A DNA stretch of 64,000 bases. Source: Diplonema japonicum. Its lineage: Eukaryota > Protista > Euglenozoa: Diplonemea. Both the position numbers and the translations under genes were made by a program. The notes under the pieces are model-generated. The model saw nothing but the letters and a program-made list of their open reading frames with translations. It was not told the origin of the DNA and searched no databases. The DNA lies in contig OZ025730.1 in the NCBI GenBank assembly GCA_964019335.1, positions 368,612 through 432,611 of the forward strand, in the 5' to 3' direction. How positions within the stretch are numbered: position 1 is the stretch's first letter; each line of letters begins with the position of its first letter. Below are positions 159-64,000 of this stretch, one piece after another.

Positions 159-2868
159 CTAACGCCCGGTGTGAGTTTGAAAAGAGCGGTGTTCGGATCT
201 GAGCCTGGCTTCTTCTTCTTCAAGGCTGATCCTCTGCTGCCTCAGGCGGATCTCTTGGTCGATGAGTGGCTGCTCCTTTTCTTCATCGTTGTCGCGCTTC
301 AAGTTGTGCGACGCGTTTGCATCACATAGCTCCCTGTACTCTGTTTTCTTCATGTTCAGAACACCCTCCGACTCGGAGAGCCTCTCCTGCAGCACTGCTA
401 CCCTATCCAGAGACATCCTCAGCTCTTGGTCTTCTTCTTCCAGCTTCAACGTTTGCTTGTTCACTTCGTCACGGCTCTGTTTAATTGTTAAACTATGTTT
501 GTTTCCATACTCTTAGATGAGCAACGCCGCATTCTTCCTCTCTCGTTTGTGCAGTGGCAAGCGCCTGGGAGTGGGAAAGGTAAATATTCGTAGACATTCT
601 TCCCCCCCAACTAGACTATACCTGTTCGGAAACGGACAGCCTGTCCAAGGCGAGCTGGCTCTCATTCTTCGCGTTGTCAACGACCTGCGCCGCATCATCG
701 AGTTCCCTGTTCTTGGTGTCCACCTCGTGGTAGCTCTGCTCTTCCCTGTCCCTCTGCATCTGCACCACAAGTTGCTGCTCTTCGACCATCTTACGCAGCT
801 CTTCGAGACGTCGCTCCGCCGCTTTTGTCTCTTCGGACAACTGCTGAGCACGGAAGGTGGCATCGTCAACCCTAGCAAGGGCTTCGGCGTGCATGTTTTG
901 CTGCTTGCTCTGTGCTTCCTGGGTGTGTGCCAACTCTGCAGCTCTCTGGTTCACTGTCCCTCTTGCCCTTTCTGTTTCCTGCCTTGAAGCATCCAGCACC
1001 GCTCTTGAGTCCCTTTCGCCTGTCTTTGCAACGTCAAGCTCAGACTTCTGATTGTCAACTACTTGTTGAACATTAGCAGTCTGCCTGTCGGCTTCATTCA
1101 CTGCACACTGATCCTTGTGCACTCCTTCTTCCATCTCACCCAACACGCTCTTAAACACCTCACAGTCTGCCTTTTGTTCCTCGTCGATGGTATAGTCTCT
1201 GATCCTCACATACATGGCTTCGATCATCGTGGGGTACAGCTCGGCGAATCTCTCCCATTCGCCAAAGCTTAACAAATCGTCCTGTGGCAGTGTGTTATTC
1301 GAAATTGTTGAAGTTTTAACCCTTCAGATCCGAAAAGTGACCCTGCCTTCGTCTCCGGAGGGGTTCTCGGGGGTTACACAGGGGAAAATCAAAAAAAAAA
1401 GAAGAAGAAAAAAAAAATGTCCAAGGTTCACTGACTTTTTCCCCCAGAAATTCATATGACACTCGTTGGGCCCCGGTGGTTTGAATCCATTCCAGCCCGA
1501 GAAAAGGGAATTGGAAATTTTACTAGGATGTCATTTTGCGGGCGGTGATCAGACACGGATCTGAAGCTCAAACTCGTTTAAAAAATTGTCGAAATTAATC
1601 TCGATCTTGGCCTGATATGACACTCACACTGCCTATGGTCAGAAAGAGTCCATCAGACACACAATAGAAACTCTTCCTTGTGCAACAGGGTTCCAAGGAC
1701 AGGAATAGGGCAACCACGTGCCTGGTGGACAACTTTTGTATCAGGGGACTGGGTGAGTTCTTAATACAGTAATGTAATGCTTTGAATTGATGGAATTAAA
1801 AAAATGACCCTAGACGGAATCGAACCGCCGTTATTGGATTTGGAATCCAAAGTGCTACCGCTACACCATAGGGCCAACGTGAAAGATTTCACGGTCTAAA
1901 ATGTGCCTGTGGCCTTGTGATTTCAGATCGCCTGCATCTTGTCAAGCCAAACAGTCAGGTGATTTTAGTTTCAGGTGTCAAGTGTTGTTATTGTTAAACA
2001 GTCACACCTGGTTGGCATCAGCCTGCTGGAATAGCTTTGTGATGGTGAGAGGTTCAATGTTGACACGCGTCTTAAGGAAGAGTTGTCTGAATGAGTCGTC
2101 GTCGACTTGGGGCTTCTCGCCAAGCATGTTAGTGTAGATGAGAGTCAATTTCTCGCCGTGGGTGAGGGACTGCTGGACAGGAGCAAGGTGAACAGAAGCA
2201 GAAGACCCTGCACGGTGTGGAGAGAGGGACTTCTTCGAAATGCCCGCGGCGAGGGATGAAGCGCGGACAGAGTGGGCCGGGGATGCCAACCTGTGTGCAG
2301 TTGCGGAACCTGCCATAGGGGAGTGATGACGAACAGGAGACTTCGGGTGGGAATTGCTCAGCCTTGCTTCGCGTTTAGGGCTCACTGCAGGGCTTGCAGC
2401 CCTACTCTGCAAGGGCCTCTTGTAAGGAGACCCCAATCTGCTCCTTGTAGGCGTCCCAATTGACCTGACGGTTCTCACAGGACTCGAAGTCCTGCAGAGA
2501 CCCGCGGGCACAACATTGACAGGGGCAGCGAACTGAGGAGGGATTGGAGATGGTCTAGTGGGAGACGGTATCGGTCCTTGACTCTCTTTGTTCCAAGAAT
2601 CCTTCTGGAACAGGTAAATCTGGCAGTAGTCTCTCAGTTGGGAAGCTGACTTCAACTCAACCCACTTCCCAACGGGGTCGAATAGCTGCACGTAGTGTAG
2701 GTTGAAGCTTCCTGCAGGGACGCCAGGCCGCTTCCTTGCAGCAATCTCATCATTGAAAACTCCCACAGCACGGGCCTTGAGCTCACCAAGCGACGGTACG
2801 TGTGTGAACTCTAGTTCCCTGTTAATCTTCGAGCCAAACAGCTCCGCTGCTGCCAATATAACCACCAT
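159..2868 (-). CDS. BILBO1: BILBO1-like flagellar pocket collar protein (ubiquitin-like NTD, EF-hand, coiled coil); spliced: 2868-2008, 1281-622, 564-511, 476-159
   Basis: N-terminus (AAELFGSKINRELEF...KWVELKSASQLRDYCQIYLFQ...WNKESQGPIP) resembles the trypanosome BILBO1 NTD. GT-AG introns 1282-2007, 565-621 and 477-510 keep the frame and rebuild the EF-hand ADANQ|DDLLSFGEW. Confidence 0.85.
1805..1875 (-). tRNA. tRNA-Trp(CCA), inside BILBO1 intron 1
   Basis: Cloverleaf with acceptor GGCCCTA/TAGGGTC, anticodon arm TTGGA-TTCCAAA-TCCAA, T-loop TTCGATT and a downstream oligo-T terminator. Confidence 0.9.
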
Positions 2869-3071
2869 TTTTTCAGTGAGTGCCCTTCCTGTTCATGTGA
2901 AGAATAAAAGTATTATCACAGAAAAGTGTAAAAGGTTCGTGTGGTATTTACACTCACAAGAAATAAAAATGGATGAAAAAGCGGGAGAGAAAAGATATAT
3001 TACAGTGCGCAAGTAAGAACAAGGCCGTGGGGGGAAAAAAGCAATACATGAATATCTTTTTATCTTCTTTT

Positions 3072-4165
3072 CTAGGCTTGCGAAGTGGTTGATGTTGATG
3101 TAGTTGTGGTTTGCGCTTGGTTACCGATGGTGATGGAGGAATAGCTCGACCAGTCTTGCTGCAATAAAAAGATTTCTTCTTCTTCTTTGTTTTGTTCAAT
3201 TACATACCTCAGGATATGCCTCGTAGCAGCTGCAAGACGTGTCGGATACAAAACCAAGGTGTGAGCACAGTTCCGAACCGTTGTCGAAAATATCACCAAA
3301 CGTCCTCTCCAAGTGATCATAAATTGTGTTTCCACACACTTTCATGATAGTGTCGCACATCTGCGAGCACACTCTGATCTTGTTGTCTCGGTAGAACAAG
3401 GCTTGATCCGGCGAGCAAACCCAGCACGCAAGAGAGTCGAGCAACGAGCTGCACGAACCTGAAATGAACCGGTCGCCGCTTATGAGTTCTTGCAGCTTTT
3501 TCTGCTGCGTAGCTAGCGCGGCAGGTCGGTCGCAGCATGACAGACTGGAAAACTGTTCGCAAGCCCGCAGGTACGGTTCAGGCTTTGGAGTTTTCCCCCC
3601 AAAATATGTGCACCTCCTCCCGTTGCTGAATGTGGTCAAAATGGCCTCGTCGCCCTGACAAGGGGTAATGCTGGTGAGTGTTGGGTAATAGTTGAGCCCC
3701 ACGTTGCCCAGCATTGAGGAGAGGGATATGATGAAAAGCACCGGGACAACAACGAAGAGGGCAGCAAGGCACTTGTCTTTCCCAGTTCGCTCATCCTTTT
3801 TCTTAAGCACGGGATCGCGTCTTTGTCTCTCTATGTTTCTCCAACTGGTGTCGTAACTTGTGGCGTGATTCAGCCCCAAACCCAAGCAAAAACAGCAGAA
3901 GGCTAGGCCTAAGGCCGTTGTCAGCAAACCCTCCACCACGTTTGCATCGTGTCTATCCTGGTCTTTGTTCACCTTATCAAAGTACACGCTGCCTGTTATC
4001 AAGAAAAGCGATATTAGTGCACACCAACCCAACATAAACTGTAAAACAAAAGTTTCTTTTTTTTTTTTTATTGCATGCCTGTATTCTTGTTGTCTGTTCA
4101 GGTGACATTGTTGGTCCAACCACCTGCTTTTCATCTTCGCTTTGCGAGCGTTCTTCATCCATCAT
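3072..4165 (-). CDS. Membrane protein with ~3 TM helices and a Cys-rich folate-receptor/NPC1-like domain; spliced 4165-4079, 4038-3208, 3158-3072
   Basis: Hydrophobic segments plus CEQFSSLSCCD...CSSLLDSLACWVCSP...VCSQMCDTIMKVC. A 40-nt GC-AG intron and a 49-nt GT-AG intron preserve the frame. Confidence 0.65.
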
Positions 4166-59137: not shown

Positions 59138-60820
59138 GACGATAGGCTGCCATCGGGCCGACCTGACCCATCCACCAGTAAGTCATGTACTGTAGTGCAG
59201 AGGAAGCGGAAATCTGCCCTGCACTGCGTTTCCTTTCTATCCATAGCAGGAAGGCCTCCTCCTCCAATATCGTCAGATGCCATCTGCGTACCTGCTCCGC
59301 GAATTGCCAGCCCCTGTGAAGGACCGAGACCACCGAGTCTTGAGATTTGTAGTAAGTCCCCATGAACTCTTGCGTTTGCAGTAGTAGGGGTCCCACTTCC
59401 TCCTTTGCGATCGAATAGTTGTTTAATCGCGGCCGACCTTTCAGAGTCGCAGAGGGAGTGAGAAACGTTTTTGATAAATGAAAAAGAGGAGTGAGTGGGG
59501 GGAGGGAACCATTGACAGGAGCTAGAGAAGTACTGTTCTGATTGATACGAGTTAGGGATGGTGGATGAGTCAGCTGTCAATGCCTCACCTTTTTTGGACC
59601 CCCACCATGGAAGTAATTCAGTCTCTTTGAGGGTTCTGACCTAAGAGGTTCCAACTTTACCACTGCTGCCAGCCGAGCCGCGGTGCTGATGACATTGCCA
59701 TCAACCTTCATCCATTCCAATCTTTCCAGCCTTTCCTTGTACACCAAGGCCCTTTCCATGCCGGATTGGCAATCTGGAGCCTTAGCCCTGATATGGCAAC
59801 ACTCCAGCTGGACCATGAGATTGTGCACCAGTGGAAACAGGGCCTCCCCTACCATGGCAAAGAGCAGGAAGATCTGCATCAGGTACCAGAACAACCTACA
59901 AACATCATGTTCATGTCCACGTTCAGTGTCCCAGGCATCCTCCAGGATCGGTCTGTAGTGAGTCTGGATGTTTCCAAGGAGCTGATGTCTGAGATGGGCG
60001 TGTGTGACGTGTCCAACCCAGGATGTCACTCTTCTGGTGTCCACTGAGTACAGAAGCTTGTCTGGCACCAGTCCTGCTTGGCCCCCTCCCAGGCCTGTGT
60101 GGCCTCCTCCTAGGCCTGCTTGGCCCCCTCCTGGGCCTGTGTGGCCTCCTTCCAGGCCTGCTTGGCCCCCTCCTAGGCCTACTTGGCCTTCTCCTCAACC
60201 TGTGGGGTTGGAGGATCCCTCCTGGTCTGCAAGACCCAGACTCTTGAGCCCCCCTGGGCTGCTCAAGAATGCCCTGAAGGCGCCCATCAGCCCCTCCGTC
60301 AGGATGGGGGCCTGTTTCTCCTCCCTAGCAGGGGAACCCAGCAGCACCAGAGGTTCGCCCTCCTTCTGGACTGCCCATAGACATCGGGGGCAGATCCAAC
60401 CCCTGGAGCCCAGGTCCTTTAGAAGGTGCATTCCGTCTCTTTTGTGAACCTGCTTGAGGCACGCTTCATTGCCCAGGCAACCACATCAGGGGCAATGGAA
60501 CCCCATTTTGTGCTCCCAGTCACAGCCGGCAGCACAGTCCGGGTCCGCCGGCACCGCGGGGGCCCCCTCCAGGTATAGTATAACCGATAACTCCAACAGG
60601 TCGATGTCTGCACAAGCCATATTTTTTGTTTGTGCAAGCTGTTTTCACCTACAGTAGGGATAAACAGACAAGCTGCCTCTACTCTTTTTTGCAATAACAA
60701 TTCTTTTCAAAAATTTGTTTACTTGTTCCAGCAAAAAAGAGTCGGCTGATTGTTTGTGCAAGCCAGACCCCCCATATAGAGGAGGGTTAAGCGCCCAGGA
60801 ATACCATGGGGCACCAGCCT
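59138..60820 (-). mobile_element. Truncated second copy of the YR retrotransposon (inter-unit spacer, gag, 5' part of YR)
   Basis: 59138-60122 repeats 63016-64000 at an offset of 3878 bp. Confidence 0.9.
59577..60620 (-). pseudogene. gag-like ORF1 with N-terminal PHD-like finger and 21-bp repeats; two internal TGA codons
   Basis: One reading frame from MACADID to KKVRH*, broken only by TGA at 60486-60488 and 60195-60197. Confidence 0.7.
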
Positions 60821-62415
60821 CTACGTTTTCTTGGTGACCCACCTGCACTGCCAAGCCAGCCTAGTGTAGGCGTCGGCGGGGTTGTCCTTCGATGGGACGT
60901 ATCTCAGCTGGAGAGTACAATCCCGTTCCTGCAGTATGGATTGCAGCCTCGCGATCCAACCCATCGTCCCTTTGTCGAGCGCATATCCCCTTGCCATGGC
61001 CCCGATAACAGCCTTGTTGTCGCAGCCGGCCACAATGGCCAGACCGCTGCCTGCCCCTGACACGAGCTCCACGAGGCGTAACACCGCCACCAGCTCTTTC
61101 TCGAAGATCGGAATGTCCTTCCAATCCCGCGGAAACACGCCGCATGCGTAGCGGTCCTCGCCCACAGTGACACCCCATCCCAGCATGCTCGCGTCCGAGA
61201 AGGCCTCCACCGGATGTCTCGAGCGACGGTCCCAGACACACCACAAATTTTGGGCCAACTGTTCCGTCTCACCAGCCAGGCAAGTCCGTGTGTCCTTGTC
61301 CAAGGTAACCTCCGTCTCCCAAAAACTCTTCCGGCGCATGCACTGACCCCTTGAAGTGTGGGACATCCAGCGAAGAATCAGTACCACCCCCCTGAAGGGC
61401 CTCAGCGTAGCATGCCGTCTCCAAAGCAGGACGCCAGCGAGCCTCCACCACAGTCTAACCGGTGCCTCCCAAGCGCGCAAGAGTGTAGAAGCGGGCCCGG
61501 CCACCTTCTGCACCCATCTTGTACTCATTCGCCATCGCTTCTCCCTGAGATCGATCTCCAAACCGAGCGTCTCCATCTTGGAGCACGGCTCCACCCGGTC
61601 GCCAATCTCCACGCGAAACTCCGTGCACAGCGACTCGAATCTGGCACAGACCTGTTGCAAGGCGGCAAGCGTAGCAGCTCCAAACAAGTTGTTGTCTATC
61701 CATGCGTGATGACGAGCAGGAACGTCCTCCGTCGCTGCAGCACCCAAATAAGCATACCCGTTGAGCACCCTGCGGAGTCGCCCGATACCCCATGGGTAGC
61801 CTCATCAGCCTGAAGTAGGAAGGCATGTCGTCCCCCGCGCCTCGGATTCGGAAGGAAAAGAACGGCCTAACCGCCTCCGGTAAACCGAACTGGAAGAAAA
61901 AGGAGCGGAAATCGTACTCTGCACAGTACTCGCAGCTCATTAGATCGGCGATGATGTCCCGGTATGTGAGCAGGTTGCAGCTGGGCAGAGGCACGTCCAA
62001 AGTAGCGTTGTTGAAGTCCGTGCAGGCAAGGATAAAGCGCAGCCTCAAGGGATCCTTCTTCGGGACAGTGAACGTGGAGTGATACCACGGCGGAGGTCCT
62101 CGTTGACGGCTCGGTCAAACCCATCATCCAGAGGGAACGTGCGTGGGGTCGTAGCTTTTCGTTAGGGGGACCCGGAGACTTCCTAAAGGACTGCTTCACC
62201 ACGCTTCTAAGGAAATGGACGTCCGTCCACCATCGTAGAGAACCCTCCAGCCTCGGGAACCTGAGCAACAAGCCATCCGTGTCGATCGTGGAGGTGGGTA
62301 TTCTGTCGACCTCACCGATGTACGCCGCCTTCGGCAGCCGCACACTCGAACCCAGCTCCAGCCACGACTCCACATAATCATAGGTTCTGAACACGTCCGT
62401 AAGCTGACCGTCCAA
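60821..62415 (-). pseudogene. RT/RNase H ORF, frameshifted near 62100 and 61770
   Basis: RT and RNase H motifs are distributed across three consecutive frames. Confidence 0.85.
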
Positions 62416-62437
62416 CGCGGCACCGCCGGCTGAGACC

Positions 62438-63454
62438 TCACTGCAGGCTGGCGCCTCCCGCCCGTGTCTCCGCCGACGCCTGCCACGTCTCGGGAGGTAT
62501 ATATAACCTCGTTGTAGACGCCTCTGCGTGTCGAGCCATGCTCTGGGCCGCTCCTTCCCCCAGACGTCGCGCCACGTGAGTCAACGCTGCATGTCTTATG
62601 TCGTGAGCCGTGACGTTTAAGCTCTTCATCAGGAAACGGTTGTACGCTATGCGGGATATCGTTGGGAAGACCCTTCGGTCCGGTGTAGCCGACCGCTTCC
62701 TTCCTTCGATCCACCGCTTCGCAGGCCCGAATAGGTTTCCGTCCGACGGGACCACGACCCCCTGACCCTTCCCTTGTCGGTCGGTCTTCCCGCCAACCAG
62801 CATGATCAAGGTCTCCCCGGGGTGGGGGAACACGTGCCCTATTAGAAGACGTTCTACGTCCACGAACCGACCGGCCGTGCTCCATTGCAAGGACAGGGCA
62901 GCCGTCAACATGTCCTGCGGGGACGAGATCACACTGAGCACCTGCTCCCGTGACACCAGAATCCTCTGGCTTTCTAGGCGATGGTTGAAAACCTCCAGTC
63001 TCCCTTGGAGGGAACGACGATAGGCTGCCGTCAGGCCGACCTGACCCATCCGCCAGTAAGTCATGTACTGTAGTGCAGAGGAAGCGGAAATCTGCCCCGC
63101 ACTGCGTTTCCTTTCTATCCATAGCAGGAAGGCCTCCTCCTCCGATATCGTCGGATGCCATCTGCATACCTGCTCCGCGAATTGCCGGCCCCTGCGAAGG
63201 ACCGAGACCACCGAGTCTTGAGATTTGTAGCAAGTCCCCATGAACTCTTGCGTTTGCAGTAGTAGGGGTCCCACTTCCTCCTTCGCGATCGAATAGTCGT
63301 TTAATCGCGGCCGACCTTTCGGAGTCGCAGAGGGAGTGAGAAACGTTTTTGATAAATGAAAAAGAGGAGCGAGCGGGGGGAGGGAACCGTTGACGGGAGC
63401 TAGAGAAGTACTGTTCTGATTGATACGAGTTAGGGATGGTGGATGAGTCAGCTG
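62438..63454 (-). CDS. Tyrosine recombinase (frame open from the gag stop codon)
   Basis: Catalytic R...K...HxxR...H...Y arrangement; no stop codon between 63454 and 62440. Confidence 0.85.
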   Translation of the reverse strand, partial: QLTHPPSLTRINQNSTSLAPVNGSLPPLAPLFHLSKTFLTPSATPKGRPRLNDYSIAKEEVGPLLLQTQEFMGTCYKSQDSVVSVLRRGRQFAEQVCRWHPTISEEEAFLLWIERKRSAGQISASSALQYMTYWRMGQVGLTAAYRRSLQGRLEVFNHRLESQRILVSREQVLSVISSPQDMLTAALSLQWSTAGRFVDVERLLIGHVFPHPGETLIMLVGGKTDRQGKGQGVVVPSDGNLFGPAKRWIEGRKRSATPDRRVFPTISRIAYNRFLMKSLNVTAHDIRHAALTHVARRLGEGAAQSMARHAEASTTRLYIPPETWQASAETRAGGASLQ

Positions 63455-64000
63455 TCAATGCCTCACCTTTTTTGGACCCCCACCGTCAAAGTAATTCGGT
63501 CTCTTTGAGGGTTCTGACCTAAGAGGTTCCGACTTTACCGCCGCCGCCAGCCGAGCCGCGGCGCTGATGACATTGCCATCAACCTTCATCCATTCCAATC
63601 TTTCCAGCCTTTCCTCGTACACCAAGGCCCTTTCCATGCCGGATTGGCGATCCGGAGCCTTAGCCCTGATACGGCAACACTCCAGCTGGACCATGAGATC
63701 GTGTGCCAGCGGAAACAGGGCCTCCCCTACCGTGGCAAAGAGCGGGAAGATCTGCGTCAGGTACCAGAACAACCTACGAACATCGTGTTCGTGTCCACGC
63801 GCAGTGTCCCGGGCGTCCTCCGGGATCGGTCCGTAGTGAGTCTGGATGTTTCCAAGGAGCTGACGTCTGAGATGGGCGTGTGTGACGTGTCCAACCCAGG
63901 ACGTCACTCTTCTGGTGTCCACTGAGTACAGAAGCTTGTCTGGCACCAGTCCTGCTTGGCCCCCTCCCAGGCCTGTGTGGCCTCCTCCTAGGCCTGCTTG
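63455..64000 (-). CDS. gag-like ORF1, C-terminal part
   Basis: Homologous to 59577-60122; ends GGGPKKVRH*. Confidence 0.7.
   Translation of the reverse strand, partial: QAGLGGGHTGLGGGQAGLVPDKLLYSVDTRRVTSWVGHVTHAHLRRQLLGNIQTHYGPIPEDARDTARGHEHDVRRLFWYLTQIFPLFATVGEALFPLAHDLMVQLECCRIRAKAPDRQSGMERALVYEERLERLEWMKVDGNVISAAARLAAAVKSEPLRSEPSKRPNYFDGGGPKKVRH

Follow-up and report, generated by a model that had tools for sequence, protein, structure and literature searches.

A conserved candidate −1 frameshift site at the end of gag in VIPER-like tyrosine-recombinase retrotransposons of Diplonema japonicum

A 64-kb window (64,000 nt of contig OZ025730.1) of the genome of the diplonemid Diplonema japonicum contains a VIPER-like tyrosine-recombinase retrotransposon in two copies, both dead and arranged head to tail. 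Translations and tblastn showed that the element carries on one strand a gag-like gene, a tyrosine recombinase (YR) gene and the reverse transcriptase and RNase H (RT/RH) region, in this order. The heptamer A_AAA_AAG lies in phase shortly before the gag stop; the YR frame directly follows this stop in the gag frame, and the RT frame, in −1, runs across the whole of YR. With moderate confidence we favor an explanation in which a −1 slip on the heptamer would give a Gag-RT/RH fusion, and YR would be a separate product begun upstream of its first AUG without the use of an AUG. The original prediction for this DNA had postulated two recoding events at the junction, a −1 frameshift and read-through of the gag UGA. 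Its frameshift half is strengthened by conservation of the heptamer, by an RT frame that is open and devoid of AUG, and by loss of the site in a related family, here termed B. Its read-through half holds up in part: the AUG-less YR stretch is coding, but YR is in +1 in family B, an AUG follows the UGA in the Trypanosoma cruzi VIPER, and the nucleotides behind the UGA vary from family to family.

In the active ancestor, most ribosomes on the full-length RNA would have terminated at the gag UGA. Some would have slipped back by one base on A_AAA_AAG, three codons ahead of the stop, and would then have read the −1 frame through an unconstrained linker of ~350 codons over YR and on into RT/RH, producing a Gag-RT/RH fusion in the manner of retroviral Gag-Pol. 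YR would have been made separately, with its N-terminus upstream of its first AUG. Since the family A YR lies in the gag frame directly behind the UGA, it would be reached without an AUG, and the leading options for this are UGA read-through, giving a Gag-YR fusion, or re-initiation after termination. We infer the slipping of ribosomes, its frequency and the route to YR from sequence comparisons.

Entry into the RT frame

On the minus strand, the junction of family A reads ...GGT GGG GGT CCA AAA AAG GTG AGG CAT TGA CAG CTG ACT..., with CCA to CTG at 63475-63449 as originally described. The heptamer (63473-63467) is in the X_XXY_YYZ phase of the gag frame, three codons before the UGA (TGA 63457-63455), and the final gag residues are GGGPKKVRH. 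The −1 frame is closed by a stop 13 nt before CCA (46 nt before CCA in five other family A copies) and is open from there on, with its first AUG 296 nt past the gag stop. It stays open for 420 codons in the window copy and for ~700 codons in copy C115 (L015/L021), where the first 566 codons represent real sequence leading into the RT motifs. In the latter copy RT is interrupted at ~2890-3090 by a run of N, possibly an assembly gap, beyond which come repeats with a 78-nt period and a long stretch of T. In the gag frame the UGA is followed by 338 stop-free codons of YR, 71 of them AUG-less before the first AUG at codon 72 (Met72). The features of the junction given in the original prediction were all confirmed.

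The same 38-mer is present in the second copy of the window (59563-59600), and the 38-nt junction occurs in seven genome copies, five of which carry GCG in place of GTG. All seven have TGA rather than CGA, including copies that retain a neighboring CpG. The family A UGA is therefore not a product of CpG decay, a possibility raised together with the prediction. The heptamer is kept in 7/7 family A and 9/9 family D copies and has an A-rich counterpart in the T. cruzi VIPER.

Families B, D and E were found by a six-frame search of the genome with a D. papillatum YR protein and were examined in loci of 3.2-3.7 kb. Family D (nine junction copies; YR ~35% and gag ~23% identical to family A) has the same layout as family A. 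Its junction, ACT CCA AAA AAG TGA, conserves the heptamer in phase with the stop directly adjacent; the opening of its −1 frame lies 31 nt ahead of the end of the stop, and its YR lacks an AUG for 65 codons past the UGA. Family B (three copies; YR 61% and gag 35% identical to family A) has the junction TCA ACG AAG CGT TGA AGC without the heptamer. In this family RT continues the gag frame behind the UGA, and YR is in +1, opening 95 nt before the stop. The heptamer is thus absent solely in family B, where RT needs no shift, which provides a natural control. Family E is represented by a single degenerate copy, which has GCA AAA AAG in phase in the C-terminal gag frame and downstream frames arranged as in family B with YR in +1, these frames being unreliable.

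In both family A and family D, A_AAA_AAG is the sole in-phase heptamer of the A/U type in gag, and it falls within the stretch of 31-64 nt where gag and the −1 frame overlap. When the two families were aligned at the site, nothing but the 10-nt string TCCAAAAAAG aligned. AAA accounts for 0.37-0.43 of the Lys codons and CCA for 0.14-0.21 of the Pro codons nearby, and the chance of Pro-Lys being encoded as CCA AAA is ~0.05-0.09 per lineage.

To obtain the number of stops expected in the RT frame, the synonymous codons of the YR protein were re-drawn 5000 times under host or element codon usage. Across YR, 0 stops were seen in families A and B where 10-15 were expected, and zero stops occurred in ≤1/5000 draws in A and B alike (P(0) ≤ 2e-4), while the third frame has 11-19 stops. 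The RT frame runs for 119 codons (family A) or 348 codons (family B) without an AUG. This implies that translation must come in from upstream, near the gag stop.

We further compared the junction with VIPER sequences of T. cruzi and Crithidia fasciculata, which were read by eye only in the supplements of Ribeiro 2019 (PMC6681497). Past the zinc knuckle, two T. cruzi Dm28c copies in supplement 10 (MBSY01000682 and MBSY01000506) read CGT CCA (or CGC CCT) TCA AAA AAC GGC CGA GGG GCT GCC ... CGC TCA TGA ATG CTG. A_AAA_AAC is in phase, 10 codons before the gag TGA, and is followed by a 6-nt spacer and a perfect GC-rich stem of 10 bp (GGGGCUGCCG/CGGCAGCCCC), whose 24-nt loop holds the gag stop (PMC6681497). 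A_AAA_AAC is among the shiftiest eukaryotic sites (Atkins 2016). ORF1 spans 1-1341 and ORF2 1342-2359, and ORF3 starts from 1218; the heptamer is inside the ORF1/ORF3 overlap and ORF3 (942 aa), which overlaps YR, is in −1. The stop lies within CAUGAAUG, with an RT-frame AUG overlapping the UGA and a YR-frame AUG directly after it (PMC6681497). The C. fasciculata copy has an A8 run past the zinc knuckle, for which the frames could not be verified. The ORF coordinates given for C. fasciculata and Leptomonas in supplement 3 (Ribeiro 2019) have internally inconsistent frames and were not used for frame arguments.

The anatomy of the junction, selection on both downstream frames and conservation of the heptamer are directly observed. 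Together they argue that RT is probably produced by −1 ribosomal frameshifting, with transcriptional slippage and splicing as minor alternative ways into its frame.

Several observations weigh against this explanation. The RT-frame linker (~350 residues) is unconstrained at the protein level, with a ratio of non-synonymous to synonymous differences (pN/pS) of ~1.8, and has no Pfam match. As it is unconstrained yet kept open, we regard it as a linker, not a domain, and the full-length RT/RH ORF of Flectonema (958 aa) has the same R/G/S/P-rich leader of ~550 residues. In families A and D, no fold predicted 5-9 nt past the heptamer was better than shuffles (z-scores of 0.35 to 1.1; pseudoknots were not searched), and a conserved downstream structure, as originally envisaged, was predicted neither past the heptamer nor past the stop in these families. 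Among the features of a canonical −1 cassette, an in-phase heptamer within an overlap, a start-less open −1 ORF and conservation are found here, and a stimulatory stem is not. With AAG in the A site, the heptamer does not rank with the shiftiest sites of mammalian ribosomes, A_AAA_AAG being the bacterial optimum (Atkins 2016). The −1 frame of the family E copy, which opens 72 nt upstream, closes after 99 codons. Frame relations hang on the homopolymer lengths of the assembly, which were checked against independent contigs for family A only, and every element copy in the D. japonicum genome carries at least one disabling lesion. Regarding the YR part of the explanation, YR is in +1 in family B and the base behind the UGA is C in family A, G in D and A in B.

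A heptamer of another type, U_UUA_AAC, occurs in family B (L023:1344-1350, C25) in the phase of the YR frame, 106 nt past the gag stop. A −1 slip at this position would carry ribosomes out of the YR frame and into that of RT; the heptamer is probably a chance occurrence, as ~1.5 such heptamers are expected in an ORF of that length.

Initiation of YR and competing explanations

When families A and B were compared over the 48 alignable codons before Met72, the YR frame had a pN/pS of 0.35-0.45, compared with >0.9 in either of the others. The YR core has a matching pN/pS of 0.345, and synonymous and non-synonymous changes in the extension differed with a Fisher p = 3e-8. A HMMER scan detected the extension in metagenome and Flectonema homologues, where a GRP motif aligns with family A TPKGRPRLNDYSI; the homologues bearing the extension each have their own Met 10-85 residues further upstream. 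Met72 is common to families A, B and D, the column being L or V in some distant homologues, and is the earliest AUG in any frame past the stop in A and B. Judging from these comparisons, the real N-terminus of YR, conserved and GRP-containing, lies upstream of the first AUG. Since the extension is coding, the D. japonicum elements must translate the YR N-terminus without an AUG. Gag and YR are in frame in families A and D and in T. cruzi, YR is in +1 in B and in the degenerate E, and published coordinates show a mixed picture for other kinetoplastid VIPERs.

Two further arguments were considered and dropped. UGA is not a special stop, as it accounts for 10/19 of the local stops, and an AUG-free leader is expected by chance in ~8% of cases, less in a pyrimidine-rich tract. 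Within the YR ORF of the D. japonicum transcript P0001, a stretch of 36 residues corresponds to the same DNA read in the RT frame. Two compensating frameshifts must hence be present in the transcribed copy, which indicates that damaged copies are transcribed.

The original proposal that the slip is accompanied by read-through of the UGA in a set fraction of ribosomes, with one mRNA yielding Gag, Gag-YR and Gag-RT/RH, is possible but, in our view, doubtful. YR continues stop-free in frame past the UGA, its AUG-less stretch measuring 71 codons in family A and 65 codons in D, and at least 48 of the AUG-less codons are under purifying selection in the YR frame and include the conserved GRP. The stop is UGA in A, B, D and T. 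cruzi, gag and YR are also in frame in the T. cruzi VIPER, and UGA followed by C, as in family A, is a generally leaky context. However, the family B extension is equally constrained despite being in +1. The expected conservation of the context behind the UGA was contradicted by CAG CUG in A, GCC GCG in D and AGC GAA in B; no structure was predicted past the stop, and UGA makes up about half of the local stops. Moreover, the ORF coordinates of other kinetoplastid VIPERs mostly place ORF2 out of the ORF1 frame, and in T. cruzi an AUG immediately follows the stop. Read-through is plausible but is not favored as a general mechanism. More tentative still is a wider scheme, in which the slip to Gag-RT/RH and the read-through to Gag-YR at one junction would supply both enzymes in fixed low ratios from one RNA, and in which this arrangement would go back to the ancestor of the VIPER-like elements of Euglenozoa, family B having been re-wired so that RT is reached by read-through and YR by a +1 event.

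Termination followed by re-initiation, in which ribosomes finishing gag would restart nearby in the YR frame and perhaps in the RT frame, on near-cognate codons such as the CUG at +4 in the diplonemid families, seems unlikely as a full account. The T. cruzi stop inside CAUGAAUG, with AUGs in both the RT and the YR frame (by eye), points to re-initiation and not to read-through in that element. Furthermore, both downstream frames are open at the gag stop in every family and in any phase, including family B, which is best explained by a phase-independent mechanism. On the other hand, families A, B and D have no AUG near the stop and family D has no near-cognate codon nearby either, and conservation of the heptamer, together with its loss only where RT is in frame, would be left unexplained.

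We consider it rather improbable that processed sub-mRNAs are the source, with a spliced leader added in the pyrimidine-rich tract past the gag stop, YR starting from Met72 and RT being reached by an internal AUG or leaky scanning. Diplonemids trans-splice their mRNAs (PMC10161547), and the window contains 19 co-oriented long ORFs. A C/U-rich tract follows the gag stop in all three families, Met72 is shared by A, B and D and is the earliest AUG past the stop in A and B, and TransDecoder ORFs of D. japonicum transcripts begin at Met72. Nevertheless, the pyrimidine tract itself is under coding selection in the YR frame, and GRP lies upstream of Met72. The RT frame is open over 119-348 AUG-less codons ahead of any internal start, and leaky scanning fails in family B because several YR-frame AUGs precede the first RT-frame AUG. 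Contigs from four public runs, which do not inform on transcripts, had neither spliced-leader ends nor gapped joins at the junction.

Two ways of entering the RT frame other than ribosomal slipping were weighed. Transcriptional slippage, in which the polymerase would sometimes add one A in the A6 run and thereby fuse gag to the RT frame, would yield the same fusion protein as the −1 slip, and the A run is conserved (A6 in D. japonicum and T. cruzi, A8 in the C. fasciculata copy with unverified frames). It is nonetheless quite improbable: appreciable slipping of cellular RNA polymerases requires runs longer than ~8-9, the run is always in the X_XXY_YYZ phase, which polymerase slippage does not need, and the T. 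cruzi stem stands at the canonical ribosomal spacing.

Cis-splicing across the stop, with AAG|GUGAGG (window copies) and AAAAAA|GUGAGC (family D) as donors and gag fused to YR or RT, is very unlikely and was set aside. The conserved surroundings of the heptamer resemble AG|GURAG; by hand count, splicing to the family A AGs at +15 or +51 nt would preserve the YR frame, and splicing to that at +56 nt would lead to RT. Family D has an in-frame GU...AG interval of 111 nt with a branch-like CUAUAAC motif, and GT-AG and few GC-AG introns are known in diplonemids (PMC10161547). However, five of the seven family A copies have GCGAGG and hence a GC donor, family B has no such donor, and AAAAAAC GGCC in T. 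cruzi is no donor. In families A and D the supposed intron covers sequence under YR-frame coding selection or its homologue, and introns of 15-56 nt have not been reported for diplonemids.

That nothing here is functional, the copies being dead and the heptamer and open frames chance or relics, is scarcely credible: every copy has a disabling lesion and family D shares a 1-nt loss in the YR motif GGKTD, but the RT frame is significantly open in two families, conservation of the heptamer extends over families and phyla, D. japonicum element transcripts carry three or more ORFs, and family A copies are 96-99% identical, implying recent activity.

Element copies, host and classification

The features of the two copies are compiled in the table. 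The first ~570 nt of copy 1 are lost past the contig end at window position 64000, and this copy, which is dead, has three small RT deletions relative to the majority of copies (four public runs). The A2 repeat of copy 1 doubles as the A1 repeat of copy 2.

Features of the element copies in the window (positions are those of the 64,000-nt window)
Feature	Position	Strand	Basis or remark
Copy 1, family A (element positions ~571-3931)	60626..64000	minus	blastn of full L016 element: 97.6% identity over 3380 nt
gag C-terminal part, frame 0, ending in SKRPNYFDGGGPKKVRH and stop	63455..64000	minus	translation
Slippery heptamer A_AAA_AAG, candidate −1 site	63467..63473	minus	phase with gag; conservation
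gag stop UGA, then CAG CUG	63455..63457	minus	TGA in all A, B and D copies
YR open frame, 338 codons stop to stop, gag frame	62438..63454	minus	stop 62438-62440
AUG-less YR N-terminal extension, purifying selection in the YR frame	63242..63385	minus	family A vs B pN/pS
GRP (AT-hook-like) motif within the YR extension	63308-63316	minus	column common to five distant homologues
First YR-frame AUG, codon 72 (Met72)	63239..63241	minus	earliest AUG in any frame past the gag stop
RT-frame (−1) open frame spanning the whole of YR	62196..63485	minus	closed at 62196-62198 by a copy-specific deletion
RT and putative RNase H coding region	60821..62150	minus	broken by small deletions near 62400, 62088 and 61748
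3' split direct repeats	60626..60764	minus	B1 60733-60764, A2 60626-60738, partial B2 60626-60647
Copy 2 (element positions 1-1555), truncated in YR	59138..60738	minus	heptamer 59589-59595, UGA 59577-59579

Copy 2 differs from the majority of the four public runs at ~70-80 sites, nearly all of them G->A or C->T. These changes represent a C-to-T decay signature on both strands, many being CpG-to-TpG, and the GTG of the window junction, GCG elsewhere, is one such C-to-T change. In gag, 21-nt tandem repeats encode a glycine-rich heptad (QAGLGGG/HTGLGGG) whose copy number differs among element copies; they are located at L016:3693-3797 and, on the minus strand of the window, at ~63950-64000 and 60100-60200.

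The family A gag is homologous to gag of family B (35% identity) and family D (~23%), and neither Pfam nor a protein search returned a match for it. YR conserves the catalytic motifs HDIRHAAL...ARH...TRLY with its homologues, which were found in D. papillatum, D. ambulator, Flectonema and marine metagenomes, and its catalytic end gave a weak Pfam match to Phage_integrase (E = 0.0086, below cutoff). The RT motifs FTVPKK, FFQF, LPMGY and WIDN are visible in the translation; the Pfam match to RVT_1 was likewise weak (E = 0.0018, below cutoff). Over the RT region, a D. papillatum 'Pol polyprotein' with PF00078 shows 39% identity, and ORFs of Flectonema neradi transcripts show 36%.

In the family D copies L035/C98 (L035:1915-1945) and L034/C52, a run of five G stands where the YR motif FVGGKTD needs six, shifting the YR and RT frames by one. 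Either the last master copy of the family already had this lethal mutation, which the copies share, or the assembly makes a systematic error at homopolymers.

The original prediction had placed the DNA in a trypanosomatid host of VIPER/TATE elements. Instead, the host is a diplonemid and, by sequence matches, D. japonicum or a very close relative: exact look-up found the host ORFs of the window in the EukProt set EP01064 (Diplonema japonicum), and the YR frame is 98% and 85% identical to Trinity ORFs of D. japonicum and 44% and 40% identical to D. papillatum proteins, a marine contig also being matched. On the minus strand of window positions 1-52000, all 19 ORFs of at least 250 aa are co-oriented, with tRNA genes in between. 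Concordantly, diplonemid genes are transcribed in long co-oriented clusters, all mRNAs are trans-spliced, and introns are GT-AG with few GC-AG (PMC10161547).

The VIPER-like label, within the order DIRS, rests on gene order, YR and RT motifs, and split direct repeats. The latter follow the pattern A1...B1-A2-B2, with a 113-nt A repeat at the element 5' end and 40-nt B repeats in a B-A-B arrangement at the 3' end, in both L016 and the window. This pattern has been given for the VIPER elements of T. cruzi and C. fasciculata (Ribeiro 2019, PMC6681497). Sequence searches with YR and RT had no kinetoplastid VIPER proteins among their matches. Element transcripts with three or more ORFs (names ending in.p2 and.p3) are present in the D. 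japonicum transcriptome. Altogether, these data establish that VIPER-like elements exist in diplonemids, a host group without an earlier report, and the 96-99% identity of family A copies indicates that they were recently active.

Comparison with known systems

The expression of overlapping YR and RT genes has been unexplained since DIRS1 and VIPER were first described. No frameshift in YR elements is proposed in the VIPER, DIRS and recoding literature consulted, which did not include Lorenzi 2006, where a prior suggestion is possible. With the same restriction regarding Lorenzi 2006, publications on the T. cruzi VIPER (PMC5146736, PMC6681497) describe the ORF overlap without recoding and leave the arrangement of heptamer, stem and stop without comment. 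The junction described here offers a conserved, testable frameshift site, together with a loss-of-site control in family B and a cassette in T. cruzi that looks like a textbook case.

Compared to the T. cruzi VIPER, the D. japonicum element has the same gene order (gag, YR, RT/RH) and the same split direct repeats A1...B1-A2-B2. In both, YR lies directly behind the gag stop in the same frame and has a near-identical length (338 codons here, ORF2 at 1342-2359 in Dm28c, 335 aa in the Repbase consensus), RT/RH occupies a −1 frame that opens within the gag end, and an in-phase A-rich heptamer stands shortly before the UGA. They differ in that the T. cruzi element resides in a kinetoplastid and has a zinc knuckle in gag, which is missing from the D. 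japonicum gag, in that A_AAA_AAC with a stem contrasts with A_AAA_AAG without a predicted stem, and in the AUGs at the YR and RT starts, neither of which is found in the D. japonicum elements.

DIRS1-type elements (Piednoel 2011, PMC3266345) similarly have an extensive overlap of the YR and RT frames, the expression of both being unexplained. They are distinguished by inverted terminal repeats, internal complementary regions and a methyltransferase domain, and the catalytic part of their YR is the non-overlapping 3' end. Viper and Ngaro elements were said to be usually without ORF overlaps (Piednoel 2011, PMC3266345), which is contradicted by the elements described here and by T. cruzi.

The identical heptamer A_AAA_AAG is used at bacterial sites such as E. 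coli dnaX and those of the IS911/IS3 family, where the sites of insertion sequences (IS) fuse an upstream ORF to an enzyme ORF. The bacterial sites owe their efficiency to a single bacterial tRNA-Lys, a Shine-Dalgarno-like element and a 3' stem; for the element described here, none of the three is applicable or was shown. The Gag-UAG/UGA-Pol arrangement of gammaretroviruses such as murine leukemia virus (MuLV) is resembled by family B, in which RT is in frame behind a single UGA, and by the position of YR in families A and D. Here, however, no pseudoknot is predicted 8 nt past the stop, the context is not conserved, and the in-frame gene of A and D is a recombinase.

The closest functional parallel to the favored explanation is the −1 Gag-Pol or Gag-Pro frameshift of retroviruses and long terminal repeat (LTR) elements, such as that on A_AAA_AAC in human T-cell leukemia virus (HTLV) and mouse mammary tumor virus (MMTV). 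Both arrangements have a heptamer near the gag end and a start-less −1 pol frame, and the product expected in each case is a minor Gag-enzyme fusion, here a predicted one. The D. japonicum element belongs to another retroelement order, has a tyrosine recombinase instead of an integrase, and showed no detected stimulatory structure. Moreover, its predicted fusion would carry ~350 unconstrained residues before RT because the RT frame crosses another gene. The junction may accordingly be described as a candidate variant of Gag-Pol-type recoding which, subject to the content of Lorenzi 2006, would be new for this order. If the slip takes place as proposed, recoding of the retroviral Gag-Pol style extends to a third retroelement order, and the junction provides a native frameshift reporter for diplonemid and trypanosome biology.

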